The notes beneath the pieces were generated by a model. It was not told the origin of the DNA and did no database searches. It saw only the letters and a program-made list of their open reading frames with translations. From assembly GCA_048013815.1 (NCBI GenBank), contig CM106585.1, positions 20,708,001-20,772,000 of the forward strand: 64,000 bases of DNA. Direction: 5' to 3'. This document shows positions 3,495 to 62,400 of this stretch, one piece after another. Position numbers and translations under genes: made by a program. The first letter of the stretch is position 1; the number at the start of each line of letters is the position of its first letter. The DNA is from Setoptus koraiensis (taxonomy: Eukaryota; Animalia; Arthropoda).

Positions 3495-6400
3495 ACGGCG
3501 ACGACGACGATTCCAATAACAGTAACAGCGACACACACACGCACACATCGGATCGCTCACATGATCGGTTTGTTGTCTCTTCTCTTGTACATTGCTAACA
3601 TTTGTAATATCCACCACACAAGCAACCACTAGACAATACAACTAGACAATACAACTAGACGACGAGCCACAACAATCAATGTTGTGACGAAAATAACACA
3701 TATCATTAAATCAATAATGCACCAGTATCAATAAAAAGCACAGCACAATACTATTGTTAATATTATTATTATTATTATTATTGTCGCGACAGTTTGATAA
3801 GACGACCAAACGATAATTGATGTATGTTTAGTAAGACGTTCAGTATATAAGAACACGACCAATGAACAATAAATCACGACAAGTCGCAAACAACTTATCT
3901 TTGGCTTGTACACCAAATAGCTCAAACAGCTCAATATAAATTTATGTATGTGGGCAATCAGGCGACTGCATCCAGCCTACACATCCTAGCCGCTTGTTCC
4001 AGTTTACTCGTCCTCTCTCTCTCTCTCTCTCTTTGAGAGAGAGAGTCTCTCTCTCAAAGAGAGAGTCTCTCTCTCGTTCACCGACAACAACCGCCATTTG
4101 GTCGCTATCTACACCCAATCTAATCTGGGCAAATTGATCTGTCTGGCGGCGATTGGCGATCAATCGCCGACAAGCTCATACTGACAGTATGATACTGTGA
4201 CAATCTTGCTCACAATTGTCAATCAAATCAACGGCATGTCGCATGTACGAGCATGTTGATTAGGTGAAAAAGAATTAGCATTGCAACTGTAACGAGCGCG
4301 CCCATATTCACTCTGACAAATTGTGAAATCGCCGCCAATCTCAATCCGCGGTGATTGTTTGAATTTCGAAATTCAAATTTGGTTGCTCGCACCGAATTGA
4401 ACCAACAAATTGAACAAACGAGCGAAAAAACACACAGATGAAAAAACATTTTTCGGTGCGTTTCGGCCCACGACTCCATGCGTCTGTCGCTGGTGGCAGC
4501 CGATGCTGGGGCCGAGCGAACTGGGGTCGTTATGGTTAACGATATTTGGGGCCAAGATGAGTCTCGAAGAACGTTGTTGTTACGCTAGCTCACGTTGGTG
4601 CTCAAAGGATTGTAGTGGCGATGCATAGAAGCTACTCCAATCGAGCAATTGCCGGCTGAGTTGTTGTTGTGCGCCACAAATCGCGTTGTTGCAAATATTG
4701 TCTCGAATCGTTCAATTAACAGCGCCCAATTTATGTTACGATCAATTCAAATCGACACATAATCTAATCTGATCAAGCGATCAGTCTGGCGTTGATTAGC
4801 GATCAATTGACAGCAAAAATTGAATTGATCAAAGAGCGTGTGTGTGTGTGTGTGTGATCAAATGGCCAATCGCACACAATGATCAACGGCGTCGATTTGG
4901 CCGCAACATGGCATTTGGTTGTTTGTATTTACAATTTGTTGTTAGTATTTACAAGTATTTGTTAGTATGCGGTCGGTTGGTTAGGTGAACCGAAGGAATT
5001 AGCGTCGCAATGGGGCCCGTTGCAACGGCCAGCCAACAGCGTGTTTGCGATGCGCCAATCCAACGATTGTAATCCGGCGATTGAGCTGCCACGAATTATC
5101 ATCGTGAGATTTGTCGGGTCAGATGGCAGCTTGCGCGGCGCGTTAGTTGGAGCGGATTAGATTGTTGCTGCAGCAGATTGCGACAACTTGTCGGCCTCAC
5201 GAGCGCTTGTCGGCCTCACGGGCGCTTGTCGAGGCCCGGTGAAGCGGTCAGCACCAAGAGTGGAGTAAACAACGGTATTGTCGCTAATTATGTTATATCA
5301 TGTTATTTTCTGTCATTGCTATTATTAACTTGACACACGTTATGCAAGCACAAGTTATGTCAAGTTCATCACACCGCTGGCCAGTGCGGGCATTAACCGG
5401 CCCTAATTACACATGATCCGGCCAACAGATGCTTTTGCGTTGCTTACGTAACGCGCGCGTTGGCTGCCGGCATATGGCTGGCGGCATGAATGAAAATGAC
5501 ACTTGTCGACACTTGTCAGCTGCTCGCAATCGTCTTGACCTGTCGCGTCTGTCACGAGCTGTGTGACAGACTCACAACTCGTGTGACTCTCGAGTTGTGA
5601 GTGGCTCGACAACAGTTACAACCTGGCGTCGCTATAAGCTGACACTATAACGTTATAAGCTATATAAGCGCCACATACCGGCCATCGGGGGCCAACAGCC
5701 GGGCCGGCCTAATCAAGCTTAGTCAGGCCCAATCACGGCGCGTTAATCGGGCCGCTTGTTGGTGTTGTGATGCCATTTCGGCGCCTCGTAATCACTCTGG
5801 CCGGCACAGTCTGGCCGGCACAGTCTGGCGACGCTGTGGCGATTGTGCCAGAGCGACACCCTAAAGAGTGCGTAAAGAGTCAAATTGCATAATGGGCATT
5901 ATGTCGCATTATGTTGTATTATGTCGCGTATTATGTGCTATTATATTATTATATCATACATTATATTATTATAAGTTTATTATGAGCTAGTAGCTGGAGC
6001 TTGCTGGCTCGCCCGGCTCGGCTTGTGTTCTGGCGTGTTCTCGCAAACACGCCAGAACACAAGCCGAGCCATGAGGCCGGATTAAAAGAAAGAAAAAGCA
6101 GTTTCCGTTGGCATGCACGCCGGGCCCCAGCATATATAAATAATATTAGCATACATTAGGGGCCCCTGTGACCTTTGGCCGGCTATTCTGTGCACACACA
6201 CACACTATACTGTCACCCAATACATTTTAAGGCTTGAGTGTTTGTCTGCACCTGACACTGGCGCTTCTTTATCTCTGGCCTGTGTGTGTATGTAGTTGGT
6301 TTTTGTGTTGGTTATATTAATATATTATGAGCATTAGGTATTAGCCGGCAAATATAGCTTATTAGCCGGCTAACAACCTTTAACAAGCAGCCTTTTCATC

Positions 6401-7024
6401 CGCTGCTCGGCTGGCTCCCCCACCGCGCTTTACTTAACTGGTGGGCATCAAGTTAAATGGCATCACTTATATCGAGCTGGCACCAGTTCAAAGCGCATTT
6501 GGGTGGGGGGCGGGGGCGCGTTTGTTTGGCCTCGCGCGCCCCAGCACCCCACGAGCCAGCGCACAGTTGGTTAGGTGGCGCGTTTGAGCGCGATTTAAGT
6601 GGAGCGAGCCAGCCAAATGGCAATTCAATAATTCTCAAGTTACCGGCCGACAATTCCAAGAAGAAATACAAGTTCTCTCAAGGTGCGCCGCCCGATTCCT
6701 GGGAAAACCCGGGGCGCCGCCGGTGTGACCCGGCGTCGCTGTTGTCGCTGGTTGGGGCGGAAGGGGGCGATATGCGTTTTGCGAGCGGGGAGCGGGGATA
6801 AATTAGCGCCCACCACTTGAGAGTTATGTGTTACAAGCGGCTGATTGGATTATGTCGGAGGCGACAAACATTAGCGCGATTGTATTTGACTAGCTGTCTG
6901 CCGAGTGGCGCCGCCGGCCTCGTCAGACGTTTTGTTGGGGCCAGAGTGGGGCCAAGTCTGCAAAGTGGCGCCGTATTAATTTAGTCTGTTCTGTCTGTCG
7001 TTGTTGTGGCTGGCTGGCTGGCCT

Positions 7025-7094
7025 TGTAACTCGGCGCTTGTAGCTCGGCGCTTGTAACTCGGTGCCTGTAACTCGGTGCCTGTAACTCGGTGCT
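7025..7094. repeat. 14-bp tandem repeat TGTAACTCGG(C/T)GC(T/C) x5
   Basis: Read directly: units at 7025, 7039, 7053, 7067 and 7081. Confidence 0.9.
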
Positions 7095-9104
7095 GGCGAG
7101 CCGGTTACGTATTCATTTCATATTCACATGTTTATTGTCATACCGCTGGCGATATTGCGCCGCTCTATATCGAATGGCATTATACGTCGTATAGTATACG
7201 AGGTATAGTATACGAGGTGTTTGGCAAGCGCGATATTGTGATATCGCCACTGGCCGACTTGTGCGACTTTGCCCAATTTTGGCTCACTTTGCCCAGTGTT
7301 ATTACACTGTCGGCTGGTGATAACTGGCGCTGCAAAATGAATATGTTTAGACTATTTACGACAGGTCGCGCGCGTCGCCCTTGAGCTGACAAACTGGCAC
7401 AACAAGAAACTCGTAATAATAACCGATTAAATTTGATCTTGCCAATCCACTTACTCATATATTACTACACACATATCTACAAATTGTGTGACACAATGCA
7501 CAGTGGCCTAGTTGTGGGCGACCCACATCGCTGACATTGTGCAACCACTTGAGAGCCAACAAATTGAGGCTCCACGGGGCCTCAATTTTGTCAATTTTGA
7601 TCAATTTATTATCAATTTTGTCCCTTCCACGAATGTCACACTTGGCGCGGCAGATGCTGCCAGCCGCTGGTTTGCGTTGGCGGCTGACCAATGACCACAG
7701 GCAACCACAATGACAACAACAACAACAACAACAACAGATTGAATTGCCAATTCATTCTGTTGTGTGCCAGCCACCACAGCTTAGGGCCATTTTAAACGGC
7801 ACGCCAATTGGCTCGACACAGACCAGCGTTGGCGCGAACAAAACAAACACACAAACCAATTGCTCTCCACTCGAAAGCCTGTACTTTGGCAAACATTATT
7901 ATGTTGTTATCTATCGCCATCATCGCGGCGTTCCTCGAGACGATGCCCCGCCGATGCCCGACGGTGATAGGCATCGCCGATGTTGCCGATGTTGTTGATG
8001 TTGTAGATGTTGTTGATGTTGTTGATGTTGTTGATGTCGCTCATGTCGCTCATGTGGATGTCGACGGGGATGTCGACGGCGATGAGGATGTGGCTGGTTT
8101 AATTAAAGTGTCGCTCCACCTCCCGCGAATCGAGAATCGACAATCGGCAATCGGCAATCGAGCAGCGAGCAGCGCCGTCTGTGCGAGCCGGGCAGGCAAC
8201 TCGCTTACCTTTGGGGCTGGTGACGGGCATGATGACGAACGCGAAAACTTATCATAATTCATTATTCATCATTTACACTCTTATTCTCTGTATAAGAGTC
8301 TTATATTGCTGTTTGTAGGACGCTAATACCAGTTTGTGTTGACGGTAATTGTGCCCATGTGAACCATTGAATGGGACTGAATCGAGTTGAAGCGAGTTGG
8401 ATGGTCGAGTCGGATTGTCGAGTCGGATTGTCGAGTTGAATTGAATTCAATTGAAACGAGTCTAGTCGCATTGTGAGCCGAGTGGCGAACAAATTCAATT
8501 CAACCACGACTGTGCGCTGGCGCTAGGTTCACTTTCACGCATGCGTTTACCACTATGTTCAACAACATCACTCAATCCAATTTGCCTGCCCATCATCATT
8601 TACAATATAATTGCTGCTGTTGGCCAACTGATCAATTTGTTGATACCTCCATTGCATGTGTATATAAATAATGGTTGACAATAATTGTGAGCTGATTCGA
8701 TGTGTGTAAGCTGGCCTTATTCAACACATCAACTGCAATGATGTTTGTTAAATGTATCATCATGCATAAAACAGCATCATTAGTGATATAATTGCTGTTG
8801 GTGTCGACGTTTGTGCCACACTCTCTCTCTCTCATCAGTGGTGGTGCATCCTAAAAAACGACACGACATAGCAAGACACGGCCAAAAGAAGACCAACACC
8901 AAGACGACGACGACAACCAACAACAACGACACGTCAAAGAGTGAGAGAGAGAGAGAGAGAGAGGGAGAGAGAGGCAACCACAACGGTACACAGACACTGG
9001 CGAGAGCAACTTGTTACAAGACCCAATCAACACGCCAAACGTCGCCGTCTCATTAGACACAACCACATTCCAACAACGTACAAACAACTAATTAATATGT
9101 AAGA

Positions 9105-10082
9105 ATGTTGTGCATAGTTGCCTCAATCGCATTTGTCATTCAATTGGCACTGACAAATGCATTTCCATTAACACCGGAATCACCACAATCACAATTATCA
9201 CCAGCTCATCACTCATTACGACAACATCTTCAACAACAACAACAACAACAACAAGCTGACACAATGGTGATAGAGGGAGCCATAACTCGCGAATGGCCAA
9301 CTCGCGAACAATATGAATCTATTATTAGGCAACAGCAACAAGAGATTGAAGAGGGTCAATCTGCGTTGCGCCAACAACAACAAGAGCAATTGTTTGAGGC
9401 AGATCAAATGCAATTATTGCAACAACAACAACAACAAAATCTGCAACAAATCCACCAACAAATCAAACAATTAGAAGAGCAAGAGGAAGAACAAATTGCC
9501 TCTATTGCTAATGTAGCTATAGCACCACCACCATTGTCGTCGTCTAATTTCATCGCTGAACTAGACTCGATGCAACAACAACGACAACAACATTCATCTA
9601 AGCAAAATCATATCAGAAACAGCAGGAACCAGCCAGGTCGAAAAACATATTGTGGTATGGACCTAGTAGACATTGTAGAATTGGTTTGCGAAAATAGATA
9701 CTTTTCACCTGTAGCTGACGAACAACAACGCGTCGTCAGAGATACTCATCATGCTATCATCTCTTCATCATCTCCTAAAATACAATCTTCATTAACCTCA
9801 TCATCATCATCATCATCATTATCATCATCATCAACATCATCATCATCATTAACATCTACTTCATCTGTCAAAGAGCCGTATGTTTCAGCTAACACGAAAC
9901 AACATCAGTCATCATTAATTAGAAGTCCTAGCAACAACAATAAGAGTTCATTCAGAAGAAGCAGCAGAAAGGATCCGCTGAGATTTACCAGGGGAGTCGT
10001 AGATTGTTGTAAAACTCCTTGTAGCTACGAGGATTTCTTACCATACTGTGAAAAAACAGCTAAAAAACCCACCATGAATTAG
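9105..10082 (+). CDS. Insulin-like peptide precursor, single exon, 325 aa
   Basis: Signal peptide MLCIVASIAFVIQLALTNA; B chain YCGMDLVDIVELVC; Ser-rich C peptide; RFTR cleavage site; A chain GVVDCCKTPCSYEDFLPYC (CC-x3-C-x8-C). Confidence 0.92.
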   Translation: MLCIVASIAFVIQLALTNAFPLTPESPQSQLSPAHHSLRQHLQQQQQQQQADTMVIEGAITREWPTREQYESIIRQQQQEIEEGQSALRQQQQEQLFEADQMQLLQQQQQQNLQQIHQQIKQLEEQEEEQIASIANVAIAPPPLSSSNFIAELDSMQQQRQQHSSKQNHIRNSRNQPGRKTYCGMDLVDIVELVCENRYFSPVADEQQRVVRDTHHAIISSSSPKIQSSLTSSSSSSSLSSSSTSSSSLTSTSSVKEPYVSANTKQHQSSLIRSPSNNNKSSFRRSSRKDPLRFTRGVVDCCKTPCSYEDFLPYCEKTAKKPTMN

Positions 10083-10148
10083 ATACATCTGACCCGATAT
10101 AAGGTAGGTTATATCGAATATATAATCAACTTACATTAATACACTTGG

Positions 10149-10150
<2 letters not shown>

Positions 10151-10230
<80 letters not shown>
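10151..10230. repeat. Perfect (AC)40 microsatellite between the convergent ILP and TELO2 3' ends
   Basis: Read directly from the sequence. Confidence 0.97.
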
Positions 10231-10232
<2 letters not shown>

Positions 10233-10380
10233 CACACACACAAACATAAACCAATTTATGAAAAATTCTCGAAAAATTCATTAATTTATTAAGTTTAACA
10301 TCAACAACATTGATACAACTCAAGTAACAATAAATAAATATGTTAAAATATAAAACACACGCTTACCATGTAATCGATTG

Positions 10381-12978: not shown

Positions 12979-13313
12979 AGTTTAACCATCGAAGAGATTC
13001 TGACGAAAGGTCTGACCCAGATCTCAAACAAGTGGATAGATGTTGTGTAATGAACCAACAATACGCAAAATCACACGGCGAAGACACGAGGATTTCTAAA
13101 GTGTTTGTTTTTTGTACTGCGGGAATTTTAAAATTCATTCGACAAATGACTACAGTCGAAGTCTTCCAAGCGCATCTAAAATGTTCACGTTCAAGTTGAA
13201 CGGTTCAACCGTACGTCTATTTAGTTCGAAATTAGAAAATATTTCCATTAAAAGTGACCAGGTCGACACATTTTAACGACTTTTACTGTAACTAGGTTAG
13301 TGGTTTATTTATA

Positions 13314-14480
<1,167 letters not shown>

Positions 14481-14710
14481 TTAAGAAGATTCTAAGACTT
14501 ATGAAGATAATGATATCTGTTGTTGTGTTGTTATCAATATTTATTATACACTAATCTGTTATTATTTATAAATAATAATAATAATTATAATATTTGTGCC
14601 TAGTAAAAGCACATGCTATATAACGGTGTGTGATGTGAAACAGACGCAGCTAAAACCGCCACAAGATCCAGAAACGCCTGCCAAACGATAATACTGGGTG
14701 CAATTTAACT

Positions 14711-16549
14711 TCATGAAGATTCTGTGCAGGGTACAGTGTACGGTGTGGTGCTGCTGGCAGAGCGCTCGCCCGCACGGGAATGCCCATTTTCACTTGTGGG
14801 CGATGGGCATGCCCTTTGGGTAACCACGGGCGGACGAGGATGAGCGGCCGGGGGAGCGCCGGGCGTGCACGGACAATTTAGAGCGCAGCAATTGAACTTA
14901 AACTCAGAATCCAGATAAGGATATCCATTGAGAATTATATGCGAGTCGTAGATACTCTTCCTACCCATAGCATCACCGACCCATTTTGATGTCATCACTG
15001 CCGCCATCAACGGTACGATAAAATCAACATTACCAGTCAGCTCAAACATTATGACCACTAATGAGACGGTCATTCTTGTTACTCCACCCAAAACAGCGGC
15101 TGCACCAACCATGGCGTACAAACCGGGTGTCATGCAATTCTCTCCTGTAGAACAGGCGTCTTGAAATATCCACAAATCCGGATTATTGAAGGCTATTTGT
15201 TCCATCATGACTCCCAATATGCGTCCTAGTATTGCGCCCATCGCTAATGAGGGCACAAATAAACCAGTGGGTACGCCCATGCCGAATGTGAATATGGTTA
15301 TGGCAAACTTGAAAATCAATGCTAGTGTTAGAAAAAATAGTGATGTGTAAACTCCGGGTCCTGCTTCTGCTATATTAATTCTATTAGTTATTTGCTCAGT
15401 ATAGTTCCTCTGGTAATCACATAGGCTGGAAACATCGGCTATTCCACAAGGAGAGAATAACAATTTTATCAATTCTGACGTATTCATCCTGGTGAATTCA
15501 TTTGGGTATGCAATGACACTTGTAACAAGGGTAACGCATAGCACTTCAGTCACAGGAAAATTTGACAAGATAGAGTTTTTACGGTAATGGCACCAACGAA
15601 CATTGAACCTGATAAACATGGAACCAATTAGGCCTCCGAAAGCTCCCAATAGTGCGAACGGGATCAATTCAAACAAAATCCAGGGACGCGTATAGTCTAC
15701 GTAAAACATGACTAAATGTTGATTACTGAACGGATTAATACTTCTCAATACAAAAGCGGCAACCAAGGCACAGAAAAAGGATCTCCATAGGGTTTTGAGG
15801 GGAAAGTAATATGACACTTCCTCAAGGCTAAATAGCACCCCTCCAATCGGTGCACCAAATGCCACTGACACTCCTGCGGCTGCTGATGCTGATAGTATTT
15901 CGCGACGTTTTTCTTCGTTTCTTGCATACTTTGGAAAATATTGTGATATAATATGTCCAATGCAACAAGCAATATGTACAAATGGTCCTTCTTTACCTAG
16001 GCTTAGTCCTGCAGCAACCACTAGAACCATACAAATACTTTTCACTGTGAAAGTCCATTTTCCTAGATATCCCCTGATTACAAATCCAGATAGAATTGTT
16101 TTGATTTCTGGTATACCGGACCCTCGAGCGTATGGAGCGAACCTCTTGACGAGAAGTCCTGCGAGGCAAGCAAAGAATAGACACCATATGATGTATAGTA
16201 AGTAGGACATGATGTAGCTGGTAAAGGCAAAGTCTGATCCTATACCAATCATCTGTGGCCATGAGCGCCATTTTGAGCAATGGGCACCCTCGAAAATGGT
16301 GTCATTCGACGACCAACAACACTGTTCTTTGTTTAAGTAGAATGCTGATACACAGATTCCCTCTTTGAGATCTTTGGCCCAACCCGTGCCTATGTCGATT
16401 ACACCAGCCACTGTACCGGCCACAATTCCTACCATTGTCAAACAGAGCCATGCTGATGCCGCTTCTAAAGGTTTTCGTGTTCTTGTTTTTTGCCATGTCC
16501 TATCCCTGGCTGTGTCATTTTGCCAATCGACTGTTTCAAAACTGTCCAT
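14711..16549 (-). CDS. CLCN3: ClC-3/4/5-type Cl-/H+ exchanger with a complete membrane domain and no CBS domains; a 5' exon may be missing (ATG preceded by CTAG)
   Basis: [26 protein letters not shown] (gating Glu), LFSLEEV (proton Glu), [35 protein letters not shown]. Confidence 0.9.
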
Positions 16550-17323
16550 CTAGACAGTATATCCATACAAGCGCTAGATGTATCGATTTTAGTTACTTGA
16601 GTAAGTTGAATGACTTAGGTATTAACAATTCTAAATTAACGATTGACAATATTGTTGATCTGATATAACAATATTGTTGTTGATTGTATATCGCAATATG
16701 TGCATAAGCATTAGAGGAAATTTATTATTGATAGTCCATTCCTTGATCATGAGCCTTTAATTGAGATTTTTTGGTCACTAATACATCCTAATAATTTCCA
16801 GTTTAGATATTGTAATATAAATCAATCATTATTTTGTTAAGTACCCACTGGAAAGTGAATAATTAACCATTCTCATGTGGGTGTATTGATGGTGCAGCGG
16901 ACTATACGAAGCAATGGTCCAAGAGAGATAAAAGTTGTTCGTCGTGCTGATGGTTTTTGAATTTAATGCAGATGAATATTATTATAAAAATATTGTTTAT
17001 AACAACGATGGAAACAGCTACATCTATTGTGATATTAATAAAGATACAGTGCATGATACATTGAATTGTATTTTATAAATATACGACAACATCGAGCGAC
17101 TCTTGTTGATGACGTTTCTACCATTGCCACCGATATAACACATTTCTTAACGTTAGGAGGCGCGCAAATCGCCAAGGTCACGCCTCGTTATAGCCAACAA
17201 CCTCAATTATTGGGGCTCAATATACGCTTATATTATGTACAGATAGATGTAATATTATTGATAATTTTTGAGCGTATTGGTTTTTGGTCAGTAGAAGAAC
17301 AAAAAAAGTTGAAACAGTTCTAA

Positions 17324-20300
17324 TCAATTGATCGGGCTAGTAGTATCGAAAGTCTCAAGATCTCTCAAGGCTTCGATTAGATTATACGCGAGACGCTGAG
17401 CCTGTCCATCCAAATGATTGGTTATTCTTTCAAGAATTATCCGTATCTTAGGCAGAGCCAACGATGCTGGATCAACATTACATAGGCTATCTAATTCGCG
17501 TTCGCGCTCTTCTTGTTGCTGTTTTGGTACAATATGAACGACACAAATGTTGATAGGTTCAGTTAATTAAAAAGGATTAGCGGTGTGAAAGAGTACAAAA
17601 AGAGTCTTGAAGAGTATAAAAATTAGATTTGATTTCAATTATGATGCCTATCTCAACTACTTACAACTGATTTGAGCCAATTGCACACATTGGGCTGGAA
17701 CAAAGACCAATTCTCTGTATTCTTCCGCCACTCATTATTCAAATAAGGACTCAATCCGACGAGTGCAAGTATTCTCTGAGAAGCTATTTTCAGTAATGAC
17801 TTGCTTAGATCAGCTTGATTTTCGACACGGCTGGATATTTGCTCTGCCAATTTATCCAAGTTTCCTCGGCGACATAATTCTACAACTAGCTTACGGTGCA
17901 TGAGATCACTGTCCAAATTCCACTCTTTACTTAATGTTACAACGTGAGTGAATAAGGTCATGGGCAAATCTTTATCCTTTTGAGCTAGATATTTTGTGGT
18001 ACTCTCACTGGTCAGGTAACTGTATTGAATGGCTCCAACATGCTCTTCATCAAGATCATCCCCAACATTGAATTGGTCGTCGTTCAACTTGGTCGCAGCC
18101 GCTATTGATGCTATGCACTTGAGAAGGAATTTATTCCTCAATTCATCCATGGGTTCGTATCTTGATTTGCTCTCGCCTTGTAAATCTAGTCTAAGTATCT
18201 GTCTTTCTTCTGGACCCATCAGCGATATTGGGTAGGCTTTGGTTATTCTCAACGATATGACCATGTACAAAACTGTACATAGTCTATTCAGCACTACTAA
18301 TAGTTCACTATCAACTAAGTTGACAGAAGATGCACCGGATATCAACGTATGCGATATGGAGTCTTGTGCTGGTGCCAATTTGCTACTCGACAATTTATAC
18401 TGCTTCTGGTTTGCATCGGCCTTGGGTGAAAGCCACCAGTCATCTTGCTTGAAAACCGGCATAGTCTCCATCCTTGCTGCCATATGAGTTTGAAGCATCA
18501 GCTCAGTAAGCTCCGAACAAAACTTAACGAAACCATCTAGACAGTCTTCGCTCATGTTCAATTCTTTCTTTATGATACTGTCGCGAACTCTTACCGTCTT
18601 GCTAGAGATTAAAGTACTATGTGTCTCAAAAAGTAGACTTAAGCGTTCCAATGTTCTTTGGAAGAAAGTTTTCCAAGCCAAATATGCCAATTTGTGACGC
18701 AGTATCGTGCTACTAATTAGAATTAAACAGTCAATAGATCTATTTATGGCAGATATGTGATTCACTGTGGGATTGTTGGACCACAATAAACAATATTCCC
18801 AGAAGCAATTCATATAGATGATGTCTGGCAGTAAACTATTTGGAAACGATGTTGTCACATGATGTATTAATTCCAGAGCCTGCTCAATCCCGTCCTCCCT
18901 TGCTTCGGATGCATTCTCAATGGTCACTGAAGACACTATTGTCGACATGGAATATATTGAATGGTTATCGGCTTCGCCAGACATGGAACGCGAGTCTTGT
19001 TGCATGAAAACATTGGATTTTTCCTTAGGTTTAGACGCCCCACTCTCAGAATCTATATTCCGATAAGTCTCAAGGAATATCCTTAGATCCAGATTTGTTT
19101 GAACTGCCCATTGGGCTACTAATTCACTAACTAGAGATGCACCTCCACGTAATATAGTTGCTACTGAAATTTTTCTTAGTTTATAAATATGCCTATTGAC
19201 TAAACGCTGTTCCTTAAATGAATAATGAAGCAACAAACTCAAAAATAAAACATCCTCTAGTTGCAGATTCAACAAAGCCAGTCGCTCTGCATCTATGTAT
19301 AGATTCTCCCATGAAGTTTCGTTGGCGGCCTCATCCACACTATCCGAAACTTCAGGTGCTTTTTCGCTTTTGTGTATCAGTCGCAAAGTATCATTCTTGA
19401 CTGTTGCTGTGGCTATTATAGATGCAAATAAGTTATCACTTTCCAAGATGAGATTATAGACTATTTTCCAGGCATTAATGAGATATGTTTCGCCTATCGG
19501 CAGTTCAGCTGACACTATCTTGAGATCATCCGATATGTGACTTGTAAGCTGTTGTAAATTTTGCCAAGTCATCCAATAATTGCATAATTTGGAGTTCAGC
19601 CAGAATTGATATAGCAGCGTCAGTCTGGATGCTGGATCTATATAGTCATAGCAATCAATATCTTTCTTGTTCGTAGCGTATGCAGAAAAAAGTTCAGAAT
19701 ACATCAATGAGGCAGTCTTGATGACTATTTCAGAATTCAAAAACTCGGCACTCATTTTTAGCAGTCTCAACTGGACAGTAGGCTTAGAACCCTCACTTTG
19801 TTGAGCTGACTTTGTCAAGTCAAAACAGTTAACAAACTCATCCCAACTAAGAGGTTCACCTAGGATTGGCCATGGTGAATCGTCGAACTCACGCCGGAAT
19901 GATTGCTCCAAGGCCAATAATGAAATACACCTAGCTACTTCCGATGCTGTCCAGCCGAGTTTATCAGCAAGCTCATCGATTTCCTCTGGATGCTCGTTAT
20001 ATCTTGAGAGCAACTTGTTCGAGGCTTTAGTGTAAATACTAGCTTCTTCCTTGCGATTGGATAATCTTTCAAATATATAACATAATTTGACAACTCTTTC
20101 TATGAGTTCAAGCATTGATAGATCATCAGCTGTCATAATATCATAGGGTGGTTCCGTGATTGATTCTGAAACTTTATCAGCATAACATTTCACTATGTGA
20201 TCCTTGAAACTATCCATGAGTTTAATTAGCAATTCAGGTGGCAATGACGACAACTTGTGAATTGCTTTCGTTCTAGATTCAACAAGTACGATCTTGAATA

Positions 20301-21900
20301 AGATATCAGATATGTGATCTAAATTTTCATCTTGTTTGAGAGCATGAGCCAACTCATTCAGTAAGAGATTATCTCTAGACTTGAGGTCACCATCTTTGGA
20401 AAGAGAGCATGAATATGGAACTTCTATTGTACAAATACTATTATCATTAGGGTTCAATAAAAAACTATTGTTGGAGTAACTTTGTTCCACTAGAGGATTG
20501 TTCACGCCCTTGACTAATAATTCCGCCCGCATGTTTAACATCTTGTAATTGTTGTACAAAAGAAGACAGTCTTTTCCAACATTGAATGCCGCCACACGAG
20601 GACCGCGCTGCATGGACCATATTTCCATGAGGCCTCGTTTTGGAGCATAAATGACTAAAAATAGAGCTCGTGGGCACTTGGTTTCGTTGACGTCTCTTGG
20701 TACTTCGACCCAACCACATTGCGCATACCTATATCCTTTCCATATTCGCACGGCGATCCAATTAGTAACATCTAGCAAAATTACACGACCAAAATCATCT
20801 GTGATGACTGCCAATCTTTTGTCCGGCGAAGAAATCAATGAGGTGCCCAATCTGTCCTTATCTTTAAATTCTAAGCTGGTTGGAGTAGAGGAATCAATCA
20901 TTTGAGTTGTGGACGCAGGAGGTTTTTGCTTCCAAATGGAAAATATCGAACCTATCCAATCCGAGTATGAGTGCACAGTGGAACATTTAGACTCCCTGTA
21001 ACAGGCTACGAACGGACTTTGGCCAGTCGTTATCAGCATTTGCCCGCACATCTTTGCTGTGTCATGCTCTTGACTAATAGAACTAGAAACTAGAGTATCA
21101 AATATTGATCTCTTTCTGACACCAAAGTTATCACAATCTTGGACGGCACCGGTGCCCTCGAGAACCCATCTTTTGCAAGTCATAACGCAAGGTAAAGTCA
21201 TGGCGTCATAGGCGGGATCTGCAACTCCTTTTGTTGTTTCTTTCTTAGCCATGATCAAGTTCTCATAAAGTCCAAAACCATCGATAATCAATGCACACCT
21301 CTTATAGTTTATAGTAAACTCTTCAGATAGTGTCGGAAAATGAGTCTCTGATCTAGAATTTGTGTTCCGCCTGAGAGTTTGAAGTCTCAGATTGATAACT
21401 TCATCCTCATGAAATCTTAATGACAACAGACACGATGATTGTTCATCGTAGAACTTTGTGTAGCCAGACGAATATCCAACAACTATCGCATTCCAATCAA
21501 CTAATCCTATTCCAGTCCGTTGTGAAGACATTATTGGAAGGCACAAAACTGATGTAACAAACTCTCCATTCCCACATTTTATATCTAATGGTTTTATGAC
21601 ATACTTGTGGTCGGAATTTATTTTAAGTCTGATAAAAGCAACCAAGTCGAGTCCATCCGATATTACGATTGAATCGGCAGTTGTTGATATCGAGATGAGT
21701 AGATCGTTTAGCCAGTTGTTTTGATTGTGTTTGTTTTTTTTCTCATCTGCTTCATCGTCGAATGGATGATATCTTGACGATCTTTTGTCTTCTCGATCGT
21801 CAACCAAAAGTGATGAAGCTTGCCGGAGAAGCGCCTGATCGTCTATTAGGGCTTTGATATCGGTGAAGAATTTCTCGTGTTGAAATACCTTTTTTAACAT
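17324..21900 (-). CDS. RAB3GAP2: Rab3 GAP non-catalytic subunit; exons 21900-17665 and 17518-17324
   Basis: DWNAIVVGYSSGY, TDDFGRVILLD..AVRIWKGYRYAQCGW, FLVIYAPKRG. GTAAGT donor at 17664, AG at 17520-17519. The 65-codon last exon reads ...ILERITNHLDGQAQRLAYNLIEALRDL...*, resembling the family C-terminus. Confidence 0.9.
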
Positions 21901-28700: not shown

Positions 28701-31700
28701 TGGCTCGGCCATTTCGTTGGCTCTTTTTAATCGGGCTGTCCAAGCTCATGATGTGATCGCCGTACTGCTCCTCGAGCTGCACCACCTTGTCGGGACAATG
28801 GTCTCTGGCCAGCGAGATGGCCTTCGAAAAGGTGTTGGCTTTTGTATACAATTGCAGGGCCTCAATAGGCTCGTTGAGCAACAGTTTCGATTCGCACAAT
28901 TTGGCCGCTTGCTCGTAATGGGCGCCCTCAATTAATTTATTCTTTATTTGGGCGATAATTTCCTTCATTTGGTTATTGTTCACCGTGAATCGCGACGACA
29001 AAAACAACGACGACGACGACACTGAGCCTTTGCCTGGTGGCGCGCCACTCGCGCCACTCAGGCCCCCATAATGATCCAATAGCAGCCTGGCTGCAAATTT
29101 CAATCTGTTGTTCCTGAGCAACAATTGCAGCGCCTCCAACAGCTGACCGGACTGGGCCATTTGTCTGGAGGCCTCAACGAATTGGCCCTTGGATATAAGC
29201 CACTGGTGGTATTCGCGCTCTGTCATGTCCTTCAATCTGTACTGGCCCCTGTTGTCTAAATATGCGATGGCTCGCGTCCATCGATTCAGTTTTTTGTATT
29301 CTTTTCGGACGGTGTCCGTGTCCGCCAGCGACTCGAACGCGTTCCAATCGTTTCTAAGCAGCGCCAATTTCCACTTGCACTGTGCCTCGTCTTGGCGGCA
29401 CGATCGCAAGTAGCGACATTTCGCATATTCGCCCAATTGCGCCAGGGCTCTTTCGGCCAGCTTCAATTGGTCCGTCACGAGAGCCTTGTCGGCCAATATC
29501 TGCCACAAACTGTGTATGCTCTTGTGTTCGTCAACATTGTTTTTTGTTTGCAACTCCGGCTTGCCACTCTGGCCACTGCTCGAAGCTGGCAATGAGGCCC
29601 CACTGCTGCCACCTGTTCGCGATTCAAGCAACGCCAGGGCGCCAAACAGGTTGTCCTGGCGCATCATGCTGTCAAACTCGATAAAAATCATGTCTAGCTC
29701 GATGAAGCCCCCGTTGGAGAGCATTATTTGCGTTGATTGTTGCTGGTGGCGACGCTCTATGGACACAATATCCGGATATTGCGCTCGCTGCGTGGCCTGA
29801 GGCTTGAGCTGGGGCCCCGCTGACACAGTGGGCACGGTGCGCGCGTCGTACACGACGGCCGCCTTCGTCAGGTCGTACCAAATGTGAATGTTGTAGCCTG
29901 ACTGGGCCACAATGACGCTCGTGCCATCGATCCACTGGGCAAATGTGCACGGCTTAATCAGTTTGACGCAATCAATTGATTGCCTGTGGGGGCCGGCCGC
30001 CTGGTACAGCGACAACGGTGATTCTGTCGGTTTGCCAGGGTCCTGCGAACGATGATGCAATCTTAATTTCAGCAGATACAATTGCAACGATCGATCCCTG
30101 AACAGCAGCGCCGAGCCAGAATCGCTCAATTCGAGCCAATCGATGGCCAGCGAATTTGTCCACGAGCACAATTGAAGTTTGCTCCTCAGATCGACCACGC
30201 TGAGCGATTTAGCGTCCACCAAATAACAAAACGACCTGTTGTTGTTGATGTTGGCATCTCTGTCGGGCGCCTCAAATCCCTTTACGCTAATGAGATGTCG
30301 ATTTGCATAATCGGAGCGCACGCTGTACAGGGTGTGATTGGTGCCCAGCTCTACGAGCATTATCTCGCCGGCCAGCGCAACGGCCACCACGTTGCTGTAA
30401 TCGAAACAGAAGCGCACATTTTGTTTGGACATGCCAGACCAGTTGAGTTCGGACACGAGACTCGGGCCGGCAAGGCCGGCCATTCTGACCAGCGCCAGAG
30501 TGTGAGTGGTCCAAACGACCGCAAACTGACCGTTCATCACCAATTTGACATTGTCTATGTGAAAGGCGCTTTTAACCATTGCGCACAATTGTTGCGTTTG
30601 TGTGTTCTTGATGCTGATGTGATTCTTGGCCAGATAATTGATTTCGAACGAGTCGTTTATGCTGCGCCTGTTCCACTGACAACTGAACAGTTCCAGGGCC
30701 CCGTTGAGGGTGCCCGCCACCACTTGCGACCCGTCGGGCGACCACACCAGCGCGGATATCATGAGCCCGTTCTTGAGGGTCACATTGTAACAGATGCGCC
30801 ACAATTGTTTTGAGTCCAGCTTTATGAGCAACATTTTGTTTGCGACACACGCCAGTATGAGGTCGCCCGAGGGCGAGCAGTCGATCTTTTGAACGTCCGA
30901 GCGCACATCCAAAGTTTGCTTGTTTCTCACTGTTACGTAACGGGCTGGCTCGGCGGGCGCCGTTGACTGGCCGCTTGCGCTCGGGCTGCGCGCCGCCGCC
31001 GCCGCATCCTGGTGCAGTTGTCCGATGAACAGTTTCCCGTCCGGGCCTCCGATGCACAAGTAGTTGTTGCTGGTGAGACAGAGCGCGAAGGGCGCGCAAC
31101 TGTGATCCAGCAGCAGGCTCGTCTGAATTGCCGCTGTCCGCTGCTGCTGCGACGGCTGCTGCGGGCCGGTCTCGCTGGGCCCCGCGGCCGCTGCCGCGGC
31201 GCCGCTCAAATTGCTGGCCAGCATCACGGACCCGTTCAGGTAACCCACGACCAACATGTCCGACAGGTAGGCGCTGTTGACGGAGCCCACCATGGATATG
31301 ACGAGCGATTGTTGCGCCATGACAGTGACAACTTTGTTGCTGTTTGTCGATCGCTGCTGCTGCTGGTCCGGCGACGATGTTGCGATAATTTTCACCTTGC
31401 CGTCCTGACTGCCAAACACCAGGCCGCACTCCAGCCACACGAGACAGGTTATGGGGCTCGAGCTGGCGAATTTGCCCGTAATAGTGGGCCGAGTTTGTTG
31501 GCTGGCCGACTGTTGACTGGTTGTGCTGGCCAACGCACCGGCCACTGGCTGCTGCTGAGTGGGGCCCGCGCTCGAGTTTGGCAGCTTGTAAATGTAAATA
31601 ATGCAATCGGACTGACCGATGGCCAGCCGGGTGCCGTCGGGCGAAAATTGAAATCCTTTCACTGTGAACGATGAGCGCGAATATTTTTTGTCCACTGGCT

Positions 31701-37678: not shown

Positions 37679-40099
37679 GCCGAAGATCTGGACAAAGCGC
37701 ACCCACAGAGAGATATGCAATGGACATACACGTGTCAGCGTGGGCGCATTTGCATTCGGACGCGGTGTTTGCTCGTTAGCGAGCGACCGCCGCGTATTCA
37801 TTGTATACCGGCTGGTATACAATAAATACAATGGATACTGCAATGAAAAATAAGGGGGCCCCATGAACACGATGAATTTCGCGCCACATACACACAGTTG
37901 GCGCACAGAGAGGGCCCAGTTTTGGCTAAACTGCAGCCAGAATTGTCAAGAGAATTGGGTTTAAGCGAACGGGATTACTGTATAATTGAGGCATTGTCTC
38001 ATTTGCACTTGGCACCGCTCGTCGACAGTCTGGCTAATCTTTCGAATGAAAGATTGGCTATAAGCGAGCACTGTCGCTGCCAGTTAATAGTGCCAACGTG
38101 CTCGCACTGGCACAATTGAAGTGATTGTAGCAATCACTTCGCTTTGAGACGCTGCCACTCGAGCCCGATCAGGGGGCCAAAAGATGGGGCCCGCTGATCG
38201 GGCGGACGATCTGGCGTGCAGCGGCACAACCGGGAATTGTGTGTTCACGCGCCAACCGCACCGCAAAATGCCCGCACCACAAAATGCCCGCACCGCAAAG
38301 TGGCCGCACCGCTGTCGAGGGTTTTGTCGAAGCGCTTCCGCCGTTTCGAAAGATTACACCTGACAAGTTGCGCACAGACAGAGATAAAAGTTTATTATAT
38401 CCATCTCGGCCAGCAACTAGCCGGCAACTAACTGGCGGCCGACCGACGGCCGGGCCCTAAGCCAGCATTGTCGACAATGCTCGCGGCTGTCTGCAGCGAT
38501 CAATTAATTATGGCCACAAACACTTTGTTTTTGTTTTTATCCGCGGCCACAGTTTCGCCACAGTTACTGTGTGTACAGGGCTCAGCTAATCGAGCTAATG
38601 TTGTGCACGAGTTGTGCAGTGTATTGGCAAACGATTTTATCACCGTCATAACAATATTTCACCCATGGACAGGCCGACAAATTATTTACAGGTTGCTACA
38701 TGGGCGCGCATGGGCCCAGAAAAAGTGGCCGACTAGACGGACGATTAGTGTCGCCGTGTGAAATATAATATATATGTGTTTTTGACCAACTATCTAACAC
38801 GCACTCTGTTGGCAACACGCACACGCACACTACCTGCAAATCTGGCCGCCCGTCTAACGAAACTCTTGTTGAGATATTCTTGTCGGGCCACTTGACGCTC
38901 GGCCAGAGCTATTAACTGTGCCAGGGGCCCCAGCAACGAGAGACGCCCGAAAACGGTCAGATGGTTGCTTGCATTTCGCCGGATAGTTGGTCGCATTTTG
39001 CCGGCATTTTGATAGTCGGCTGGCTAGAAATAAGCGCAAATAGATGGCGATCGGCGACAGTTTGCCGGCTTGCCAGCGACCAACCAAAATCTATTGGCCG
39101 CTACTTGTTTGCCTAACTAACTTTATGCTCATCGATGCATTATAACGCTCACATGTATACAAGTGCACAAGTGCAGTAATTGGCCAATAATAACTGGCAA
39201 CCGACCGACAAACAACGCCAATATATGGCACAACAACATTGACAAAATTGGCGCGCTTCCGATCAAATGAAGCGCGAAAATACGTGCCAGATAATTTGTG
39301 CCAAATCGCTTTTTCGGCCAGATTATGCAGATTTTCGCATAAGCATAAACAAACACTTACGCCGGCATGTCGGACACTGTCGAAGAAAGTTGTTGCTGTT
39401 GTTGCTGTCGTTGCTGTTGTTGCTGTTGTTGCTGTTGTTGCTGTTGTCTGTCGGTCGCCTGAAGAGTTGTTGAGACACACTCAACCAAGCAGCACCCAAT
39501 AAACACAAACTTCCAGACCAATAGCTCGCTGCTCGTTCAATCAGTTGGTCATGTAATCCTCCAGTCATTTAGCGTGTTACAAGGCGCCTCTTGTTAGCGG
39601 CTCCATTCTGGTCGTTGGTCGGGGCCCACTGACAAGAGTAGCAATTTATTCGTTTGGTCGTTTAGTCTTGGAGTCGTTTAGTTATGAGATGGGGCGCTTC
39701 GAAATTGCGAAAGCATGATCCGAATCATCCAGTCGTGTCACCTGCCCGGCCACCTAGCGACGGAAATGAGCCATGGATATGCATGCACCATTGATTCTTT
39801 TTTCGCGCCCATTTGATTGTTGATTAATGTTGATGTACTAGCTACTTGTACGTAATTCGAGTTGTTTGTTGTTGTCGGTCACAACTATCGCAATGGTGAC
39901 GACTGCAACACGACGACGACGACGACGACAACGACAACAACCTGCACATAGATTAGACGCGTATATTGTGATAATAGACGACAATTATTAGTCGCAGCAT
40001 TATTTGACTCTGACGCATTTGACAAGCTGCATCATGGCTGCTTGTATCATTAATTCAGGTGACACACAACACAAACAAATGATGATAATGGTAGCCATT

Positions 40100-59400: not shown

Positions 59401-62400
59401 TTTGTCGTTGCTTGTACGTCTGTGATTGTCGCCATAAATGTGGTTTGCGTCGCGCTAATGTGTCCGGTGGCTGTGACTGCCAAGAGGCTCGCCCCGTCGG
59501 CGATATGTCCGTCGGTGATACTCGGAAATCCCTGCAAATGTGGCGCCCATCTGTCTCACTGGCTCACTCGCTTTTTGCAGCCAACAACCGTGCACCGGTT
59601 TCAGTGTCAGTATTGGGCGAACATTGATGCCCACCAATCGCACGCCAAATTGGGGCCCCAATAATAGTCATCTGAAAACGCTAATAGTCATTCGAAGGTG
59701 ACAGGTGGTGACAATCTCGTCCCTGTTCTTTTTCCTTGTCTCACTCACCTGGCGAGCTAGTGATTGATACAGTTGCCGGCGTTGATTAACGATGGCGCTG
59801 TTCCCGGCAAATGAGAGCATTGGTTGCTTATGTGTGTCGGGCTAGCCATCGACCGCTTAATTTACAATGAATTTTCTGTAACTCAACACAACAGCGGCAC
59901 CAGTGACATTTGGCTCTGTGCTGTTGGCCCAATCTATTTCATTAGTTAATTGGCAGCAGCAGCAGCGGTCGAGCAGTGGTCGAGCCTGACCGAAGCAGTC
60001 TGACAGCGCAAATGTAAACGACAGCGGCATAAAAGCGGCCCGCTGGTGAATAGCGCTGGCCCCATTGCATACAGCTCAGCGTGAGGCCGGCGAGTCGGGC
60101 AGCCGGACAGCGGGACAGCGGGACAGCGGGATTAATATCGTGTCCGGCCACAATGGTAATCACTCAGTCAAACTGTCACTAATGTGTCAGTTTCTTGCGT
60201 GCGACACAATGATTAGAGCCGCATTTGTGCCATTCGCCATTCGTATTCACAAACCATTTGTAGCAAGAGGCCGGAAAGGGTCGCTAGGTCGGCTCGGCCC
60301 GGCAGCGAATTGGAGTGCTTTCGAGCATGACTGTGCTTGTATCATTTGTTTCGACGTCCACAATGTTTGCCCATTCGAATGGCCTCTAGCAGCTGATGCC
60401 CAGTTAAGTCCTAAATAATAATGTTTACATTTCGTGCTGTCCTTAACGCTTGCCCAAGATGCTGCGGGCATATTTTTTTGCTTCGGCCAAATGCACTTGT
60501 TTGCCATGGCTGGCAGCGAAAAATTATCAAGATTTCTACGTAAAATGTTCCCCCGTGGCTTGATTGTGACGACATATGGACCATGGGCTACGCTGCAAAA
60601 AGTATGATACACGAAGATGCGGCATATGATGGATTTTGTGAAAATAGTCAGTCAGCAGTCAGTCAGTCAGTCAGTTATTGGAACAGGCCAACCGGAAACC
60701 CCAAGCCGAAGCTCTATACACCTTTTCAGTTCAGTCATGCTAATGCATCTTAATCAGGCGAAAAAACACCAGATATACACCATTGTGTTGGCAGTGAATT
60801 CAGTGTTTTCAGCAACAAAATGAATGAAATTCTGAGTGAAATTCTGTGAGTCTGACTACTGGAGAAGATGCAAATTTTTGCATGTCGAGGCTTGTTTGTT
60901 TGCATATGTATTGAGCGAAATGTGGACACTCATTACATACAAATGGCCCACACTAATGCCCCTGACCGAGACCACAATTTATAACAATGCTCAATGATGG
61001 TCTCGCCATAAAATGCAGCCATGGGTGACCTCTGGCTGCTATAGTCAGCTATTTTGCGTCAGTTAATTTAAAGCGTGTTAGCAGCGCTCGCGTGTTTGCT
61101 CGTTTTTATTTCGTTCCGTTTCACTTGGCCTCGTTATATCAATTTAAATCATCTGTTTTATGTGTCACACCATAAATGCCCGAAGAGCTTGCATCATCGT
61201 TTAAAATTTCCATCGCTACTGGTGCGACTGCATCCTTGCTCACAACGTTGCGCATCTCATAAAACAATGCCCAGCTCATATCATCTTTTTTTTCTCCGTT
61301 TATGTTACATCATTAGCATTATTAGTAGCAATATTAATTTTGTCGTTTTGGTCCCCGACTGAGCCTACATATTCCATTATAAACATGTACATATACACTC
61401 CATGTATGTGTGTGTGCGAAAATTCATTTCGAAAAATATCCATTCATGAATATTCGCGCATTCTGTCAGTATTTTTTTTTCTAAACAGTTACGAATATTA
61501 GATGACATATTTTAATGGATAGCAACCACACTCTCAGTGGGCAAGATACCAACTTTGCTTCGCTGCTCGCCCTGACCCTGGTACACGCAAATCCGATGGA
61601 AGAATGCCAGCGAACACCAGCACACACGAACTAGATACAGCAACAAGTGACAAGTCCAATAAGAATAACTTCAAATTATTTTCTCCGGCTATTGATAGCT
61701 CTATACAATTTGCTCAGATTTGCATGCTTAGATTGAAATCGGAGCAAATTCTACACAAGATCAGCTCACTACAAATTTGTCTCATCTCAACTGATGATGA
61801 TGATGATCTGATTAGTTTTCATTTACTGTTATTAAGCGTAGGTTGGAGATGATATTTACCGTTTTTTTTGCAGCTGACATTTATCTTACAAAGCATGAGT
61901 ACAATTGTTGCGCTTGCATCTTTCTGGTCTTTTACAAATGAGACTGGAAAAAGAAGACTAGACTTGGAAAACTCATAACAAAGTACTAATTCGGTGCAAT
62001 AGAAAAGATATTGTCACCAACGATTGTCATTGGACTTTCAAACAGGAAATATAAATCGGCGTTTGAATTGTTTATCAGTTTTTCAGATCCTGCCATCGCT
62101 CGCAAACATCATCTAAGTCTATACACATGGGCCTACAGGGCCATAGATGTTTCTTCACTCTTATAGGTTGTTATGAACAAATTCAAGATAGCTATCTGGA
62201 GAAATATTCTCATGAAAAAAGGTATATTCAACCAAGCATGCAATATTTCTTTTTCTAACATTTAATCAAACCAATAAAAACATTTAGCACCTCTATTGGA
62301 ATTACTTTTTTTTTCTCATTCAGACCACATGATTGTAATTGAATGATTTCAATCACGATTTGAATCAGATAATTTCGAAATCACCCAACTGTTGGTTCTA

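Follow-up and report, generated by a model that had tools for sequence, protein, structure and literature searches.

A ClC-3/4/5-type exchanger gene that ends before its CBS domains in an eriophyoid mite

Introduction

Can an animal ClC exchanger do without its cytoplasmic CBS domains? The question is raised by a gene on contig CM106585.1 of the mite Setoptus koraiensis (GenBank assembly GCA_048013815.1, positions 20,708,001 to 20,772,000), a stretch of 64,000 nucleotides that was analysed at its full length and that we call the window throughout. Here, the reading frame of a ClC-type exchanger runs through the whole transmembrane domain and then, at the place where the CBS pair should begin, passes into a short GC-rich sequence and stops. 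Truncations that remove the CBS domain of ClC proteins cause human disease. Reviews state that all eukaryotic ClCs carry a large cytoplasmic CBS domain, and truncated mammalian ClC proteins, such as ClC-5, are reported to be non-functional (PMC5362633). [quoted passage not shown]

A sequence-only reading of the locus had left several explanations side by side: a natural truncation or a neofunctionalised exchanger, a split gene, and a rearrangement or assembly junction. Is the gene truly truncated, or does its missing part lie elsewhere? And if it is truncated, does it still encode a working exchanger, or has it only just been broken?

Results

The open reading frame and its transport residues

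The gene, of the ClC-3/4/5-type 2Cl-/H+ exchanger kind, occupies 14711..16549 (all window features described here lie on the minus strand) as a complete, intronless open reading frame of 612 codons followed by TGA. Its conserved part, M1 to N553 (14891..16549), begins with a short N-terminal segment and takes in the whole transmembrane domain up to and including helix R, and is homologous both to the closest relative, on a contig that we call L001, and to a clade of TMEM9-fused exchangers; the last strongly conserved block before the usual start of CBS1 is NGYPYLD, with which helix R closes (residues 541-547, 14909..14929). Pfam recognises Voltage_CLC alone (PF00654, E 5.1e-92, residues 127-525), at 309 bits against a cut-off of 24.8 and over profile positions 2-345 of 346, with CBS absent. 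The best matches among solved structures are ClC-3 chains (PDB 8jev and 9dnw; E ~2e-229, 767 bits), whereas ClC-2, ClC-1, ClC-7 and ClC-6 reach at most 199 bits in the same comparison, and the named protein matches carry an exchanger 3/4/5 annotation. Residues 2-560 align with residues 86-656 of the 818 of ClC-3; nothing in the frame corresponds to the final ~160 residues of ClC-3, which make up CBS1, the linker and CBS2.

The signature of an exchanger is present in full, namely the Glu in GKEGP, the Glu in SLEEV, the Ser in GSGIP and the central Tyr in helix R. E187 (gating), E244 (proton), Ser144 and Tyr534 all stand in invariant columns of a 52-sequence alignment, which bears out the earlier statement that both the gating and the proton glutamate are intact. 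The 553 conserved codons contain neither a frameshift nor a stop, and the AF2 model of the protein has a confident helical transmembrane domain. On every feature by which membership was judged, the predicted protein is a member of the CLC family and of its ClC-3/4/5 exchanger branch, with a single exception: it lacks the two-CBS cytoplasmic domain that defines eukaryotic CLC architecture.

At the opposite end, the frame starts at the equivalent of ClC-3 residue 86, with ~85 N-terminal residues absent, and this start is common to L001. An in-frame TAG stands directly 5' of the ATG, inside an acceptor-like tgtctag (16549-16560), and the gene may have an unseen 5' exon.

Absence of CBS sequence from the window

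If the CBS domains were still encoded nearby, similarity searches of the window would be the place to meet them. The last 260 residues of each of seven full-length relatives, used as tblastn queries, matched the window only up to 14867-14894, and nothing else appeared at E<=10. A profile HMM made from 81 CBS tails found no CBS in the six-frame translation of the 64 kb (best E 4.9); the same profile scored the CBS region of L001 at E 7e-50 and the last exon of L001 at 4e-07. Likewise, tblastx with the remainder of L001 gave no further match in the window. The claim that CBS sequence is absent from the other minus-strand frames and from the ~280 nt before the next gene is, by tblastn and the CBS profile, borne out for any frame of the 64 kb. 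That next gene is MetAP2 (13314..14429, ATG at 14427-14429), on the same strand as the ClC gene and a new downstream neighbour to it; the AT-rich spacer between the ClC stop and its ATG (14430..14710) has no coding similarity to CBS, and carries an AATAAA at 14540-14545, 166 nt after the stop.

Perhaps, then, the CBS pair is encoded further away, by a separate gene or by an exon joined through long-range or trans-splicing. Against such a split stand the absence of CBS from every frame of the 64 kb, the other complete genes lying directly downstream, the lack of a good-consensus donor at 14860-14911 (judged by eye) and the size of the sole intron seen in the relative L001, which measures 109 nt. 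When the CBS region of L001 was put to a word search, in a database that does not include this species, no stand-alone CBS protein from these mites came up; the matches were ClC fragments only, at 34-41% identity, and the one that was checked is a single exon out of the several that make up a ClC gene. We consider a separate CBS gene improbable to a high degree, and the distal CBS exon that had been envisaged is unlikely on the same grounds.

The breakpoint in comparison with a close relative

L001 is a 12.4-kb Logan contig (SRR33593474), and its ClC protein, P0001, is the one CBS-carrying protein at 93% identity to the window protein in a word search, and the only sequence of the window's ClC-3 type found in the protein search. 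Blastn aligns L001 2556-9445 collinearly with window positions 21720-14906, at 82% identity, across RAB3GAP2 (17653..21900 in the window), the intergenic DNA and the ClC gene. RAB3GAP2 is the upstream neighbour in both, and this common neighbour ties the two ClC genes together as orthologs; their proteins have the start MDSFETVDW in common and are identical at 519 of 548 residues. At 14906 the similarity stops, with none beyond, and this break coincides with the place where CBS1 should begin. The L001 frame, in contrast, runs on into two CBS domains (P0001 residues 560-742; 31.8 bits for Pfam CBS, in two stretches), reaches a GTGAGT donor at 10027 and a 109-nt GT..AG intron in CBS2, and finishes in a last exon (10136-10228) whose end resembles that of other ClC-3 proteins; this exon was read and translated separately, the exons not being joined into one sequence. 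Downstream of it lies a convergent UQ_con gene and not MetAP2.

The comparison with related mites that the sequence-only reading had called for has a clear outcome: the syntenic ortholog keeps both CBS domains, and the window gene is truncated. As similarity ceases just where CBS1 should begin and L001 keeps CBS, the proposal that finds support is natural truncation, with a rearrangement or a deletion having set the breakpoint. DNA similarity to L002, a b-type contig of the TMEM9-fused sister clade, reaches somewhat further, to 14891, which corresponds to N553. The breakpoint zone can be placed at 14890..14906, where L001 similarity ends at 14906 and L002 similarity at 14891, and its 3' side is unrelated to any relative. 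Because similarity to L002 extends to 14891, the homologous part of the protein is M1-N553 and the new tail consists of residues 554-612. A tail of 63 amino acids had been described; the count from F550 to the TGA at 14711-14713 is correct (65 codons follow NGYPYLD), and the tail is indeed new relative to its kin, but with homology running to N553 the truly new part amounts to 59.

The CBS region of L001 (9445-10228) deserves an observation of its own. Its identity to the corresponding region of an earth mite is 37%, compared with 67% in the match between P0025 and the window protein (95% of the window protein), and a ~46-aa insert lies between CBS1 and CBS2. Constraint on CBS may already have been relaxed in this mite group before the loss.

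The junction in independent sequence data

An abrupt change of composition and a break of synteny at one and the same place could also betray an assembly fault or a chimeric join at the GC-rich segment. Independent data speak against this. Of the words sampled from 13400-16500, half or more are present in each of eight public runs, and 85% or more in six of these. The contig from one of these data sets, X2, which comes from another study and bears another organism label, is 5787 nt long at a depth of 121 and covers 13173-17800, unbranched and with 0 differences; a 971-nt contig from a third study under yet another label, X7, covers 14635-15581, again with 0 differences. Both run through 14635-14910 identically, and the junction is present in independent data. 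The assembly-junction explanation is refuted by these two contigs, and an artefact of whatever kind has, in our estimation, almost no probability left.

In a further data set, X12 (a run that is only guessed to be RNA, depth 2.3), a single 234-nt piece lies at 14886-15119 and ends 5 nt past the homology breakpoint; its end at 14886 is probably a coverage drop-out.

The GC-rich tail

What, then, is the sequence that took the place of the CBS pair? Residues 554-612 (59 aa, 14714..14890) are rich in Cys, Pro, Ala, Ser and Thr and predicted to be disordered, and AlphaFold gives residues 544-612 a pLDDT of ~30. The tail had been called conspicuously GC-rich against AT-rich flanks. Locally this is so (GC 0.64-0.66 at 14750-14899 versus 0.17-0.27 at 14450-14649), and the region belongs to the top 0.44% of 150-nt windows by GC; however, 36 other islands with GC >=0.56 occur in the window, so the tail stands out from its surroundings without being unique. 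Islands at 30602-31684, 6381-7114, 38054-38392 and 59912-60224 peak at 0.65-0.72 (150-nt windows) against a window mean of 0.43, and base composition in this genome is on that account markedly uneven. At codon positions 1, 2 and 3 the tail has a GC of 0.57, 0.77 and 0.53, compared with 0.45, 0.43 and 0.40 in the core. Shuffling the tail DNA yields a 60-codon open frame in 15% of cases (P=0.15), a length that is unremarkable for its composition.

Several origins were considered, and none found support. An RNA gene finds nothing relevant in Rfam at E<=1, across the window and the 3' region of L001 alike, and fold z-scores on the two strands are -0.6 and -0.4. Degenerate CBS DNA is likewise rejected, for in alignments to the CBS DNA of L001 67 of 300 shuffles score as high, and the CBS profile is negative. 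A copy from within the window, or a repeat, would have left more than the chance matches of 11-12 nt that are seen. Nor do the upstream regions of MetAP2 at the loci of Fragariocoptes setiger (L003) and another mite (L004), where the neighbours differ, show any similarity that would point to ancestral MetAP2 upstream DNA; relatives of the tail were absent from the JGI metagenomes searched, and its six frames match no Pfam family at E<=1. The idea of a neofunctionalised tail finds no support in a sequence that is predicted to be disordered, matches no family and has the open-frame length expected from composition. The simplest reading is that the tail would be an accidental read-through into GC-rich filler DNA.

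The region of the stop codon (14711..14733) matches the 3' UTR of L001 (L001 10301-10323) at 21 of 24 nt. None of 400 shuffles reaches this match under strict scoring, whilst under permissive scoring it is not significant, and upstream of MetAP2 there is a further, similar AGAATCTTC motif. The match to L001 could conceivably be what is left of the ancestral 3' UTR; were that so, the event might have been an internal deletion of ~840 bp with ~160 bp of filler.

A sister clade without CBS domains

The window gene is not alone in its lack of CBS. The next 23 protein matches (P0002-P0024, 75-82% identity, including A0A6G1SM83 of Aceria tosichella, P0013) have no CBS, and nearly all of them end shortly after helix R in a conserved tail of ~23 aa that is common to many samples. 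A TMEM9 domain stands at the N-terminus of at least 17 of these 23 proteins; the remaining six are shorter at that end. The Pfam TMEM9 match covers profile positions 1-70 of 145, well short of the C-terminal half; by eye, the TMEM9 part consists of a Cys-rich luminal part and a transmembrane helix, from which a short linker leads into the ClC. The fusion also exists at the level of genomic DNA, since the JGI genomic contig L002 encodes TMEM9 and ClC in one open reading frame (8001-10238, plus strand) with no CBS downstream. A literature search found no paper that links TMEM9 with mites or mentions a TMEM9-ClC fusion.

In a quick maximum-likelihood tree with SH-aLRT support, the window protein and P0001 group together (98) as sister to the CBS-less clade (99), and the joint group (100) stands apart from other mites, so that the window ClC is sister to the TMEM9-fused clade and not inside it. 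As P0001 keeps CBS, the domains must have been lost at least twice, the loss in the window lineage being independent of that in the sister clade. A TMEM9 domain hidden upstream of the window frame is excluded, for tblastn with six TMEM9 parts found none in the 64-kb window or in L001, and the frame starts with MDSF just after an in-frame stop. Since the sister clade is CBS-less and retains its conserved short tail across many samples, CBS-less ClC-3-type exchangers are viable in these mites.

Selection on the transport core

Over the 548 codons shared by the window and L001 ClC genes, dN is 0.026 and dS 0.46, a dN/dS of 0.056 that, set against the 0.075 of the neighbouring RAB3GAP2, makes the ClC gene at least as constrained. 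The core is conserved, and the ratio indicates that it is still under strong purifying selection. A pairwise ratio averages both lineages, and a very recent truncation is for that reason compatible with 0.056; a pseudogene of any real age, on the other hand, would carry far more changes. Polarised amino-acid changes number 14 in the window lineage and five in that of L001 (p=0.064; end branches 0.046 versus 0.017), a trend that would suggest acceleration and not decay, and that could reflect relaxed constraint. Between the same two species (window 14906-21720 versus L001 2556-9445), dS is 0.46 for ClC and 0.91 for RAB3GAP2, a two-fold gap between neighbours.

These figures bear on the most serious rival, namely that the gene has been freshly disabled: a recent truncation would have left a protein that misfolds or is mistargeted, with too little time since then for the gene to decay, whilst another CLC or an unseen paralog covers its role. 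The reported failure of truncated ClC-5 proteins (PMC5362633) fits with this, as do the faster trend on the window branch (14 versus 5) and a tail that resembles accidental read-through. Yet the 553 conserved codons are free of frameshifts and stops, the transport residues are invariant, the sister clade lives without CBS, the protein search holds one ClC-3-type sequence of the window's type (P0001), and data from several studies, under several organism labels, show one and the same junction. We judge fresh disablement to be rather unlikely, although it deserves more credence than a split gene. The reading that we favour, and hold to be probable with some reserve, is a real, lineage-specific truncation that has left a functional CBS-less ClC-3/4/5-type exchanger.

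Discussion

How might such a gene have come about? We propose that, after the split from the L001 species, everything that encodes the two CBS domains, the linker between them and the normal C-terminus was lost by deletion or rearrangement, with a breakpoint just after helix R, at about 14891-14906. The frame would then have read on through 59 codons of unrelated GC-rich DNA to the first in-frame stop, adding a disordered tail rich in Cys and Pro. The product would be an exchanger dimer without CBS nucleotide sensing, and without the CBS1 surface that helps to dock the inhibitory tail of TMEM9. Given a complete transport core under strong purifying selection, this dimer most likely still works; from the sequence, we infer that the gene yields a protein able to fold, traffic and transport, in which case it would be functionally akin to a CBS-less prokaryotic exchanger of the ClC-ec1 type.

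Each of the known systems that it resembles differs from it in some respect. With vertebrate ClC-3 (8jev, 9dnw) the window protein has in common a Cys-containing helix-B insertion, both glutamates, the Ser and the central Tyr; it differs in lacking the last ~160 residues and ~85 residues at the N-terminus, and because those last residues are absent there is neither an ATP-binding site nor a CBS1 helix-2 surface. ClC-ec1 (PDB 1kpk/1ots) likewise consists of a transmembrane domain only, with detectable homology (E ~1e-18), but is a distant, bacterial protein, whereas that of the window is an animal CLC of the vesicular type with a secondary loss of CBS. The pathogenic C-terminal truncations of human ClC-5 and ClC-1 have also lost all or part of the cytoplasmic domain, yet they are disease alleles, non-functional or altered in gating (PMC5362633), whilst the window form appears to be carried by a species and has its core under selection.

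Closer to home, the eriophyoid TMEM9-ClC proteins are ~80% identical to the window protein, end soon after helix R without CBS, and share with it the E-x-K-F-N just before the break. The window gene, however, has no TMEM9 in the 64 kb, keeps an ordinary N-terminus with the motif D-x-F-x-T-x-D-W, and ends in an unrelated tail of 59 aa. The ortholog in L001 has the same start, the same upstream neighbour and the 519 of 548 identical residues in common with it; in contrast to the window gene, it retains both CBS domains, the intron in CBS2, a canonical C-terminal end and UQ_con downstream.

Taken together with the sister clade, we could speculate that gall mites dismantled the cytoplasmic regulatory apparatus of ClC-3/4/5 at least twice: once through a TMEM9 fusion that dropped both the inhibitory tail and CBS, and once through the window lineage's own deletion of CBS, followed by read-through into new sequence. 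We regard this wider scenario as an even call. The interest of the window gene would lie chiefly in its being one of two independent natural CBS deletions. Were both forms functional, an animal vesicular CLC would need no CBS in vivo in order to fold, dimerise, traffic and transport, and the TMEM9-ClC fusion would serve as natural Rosetta-stone evidence for the TMEM9-CLC partnership. Side by side with the TMEM9-fused, CBS-less sister clade, the window gene suggests that extremely miniaturised animals can lose the inhibitory module as a whole, both CBS and the tail of TMEM9. Indeed, a CBS-less exchanger and a 95%-identical ortholog that keeps CBS form a matched pair for the role of CBS in transport, nucleotide sensing, TMEM9 inhibition and sorting.

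A minor observation concerns the new neighbour. MetAP2 measures ~371-385 aa in this and other eriophyoid mites, against ~430-520 aa in most other animals listed, and the charged N-terminal extension usual for MetAP2 seems to be missing in this mite group.
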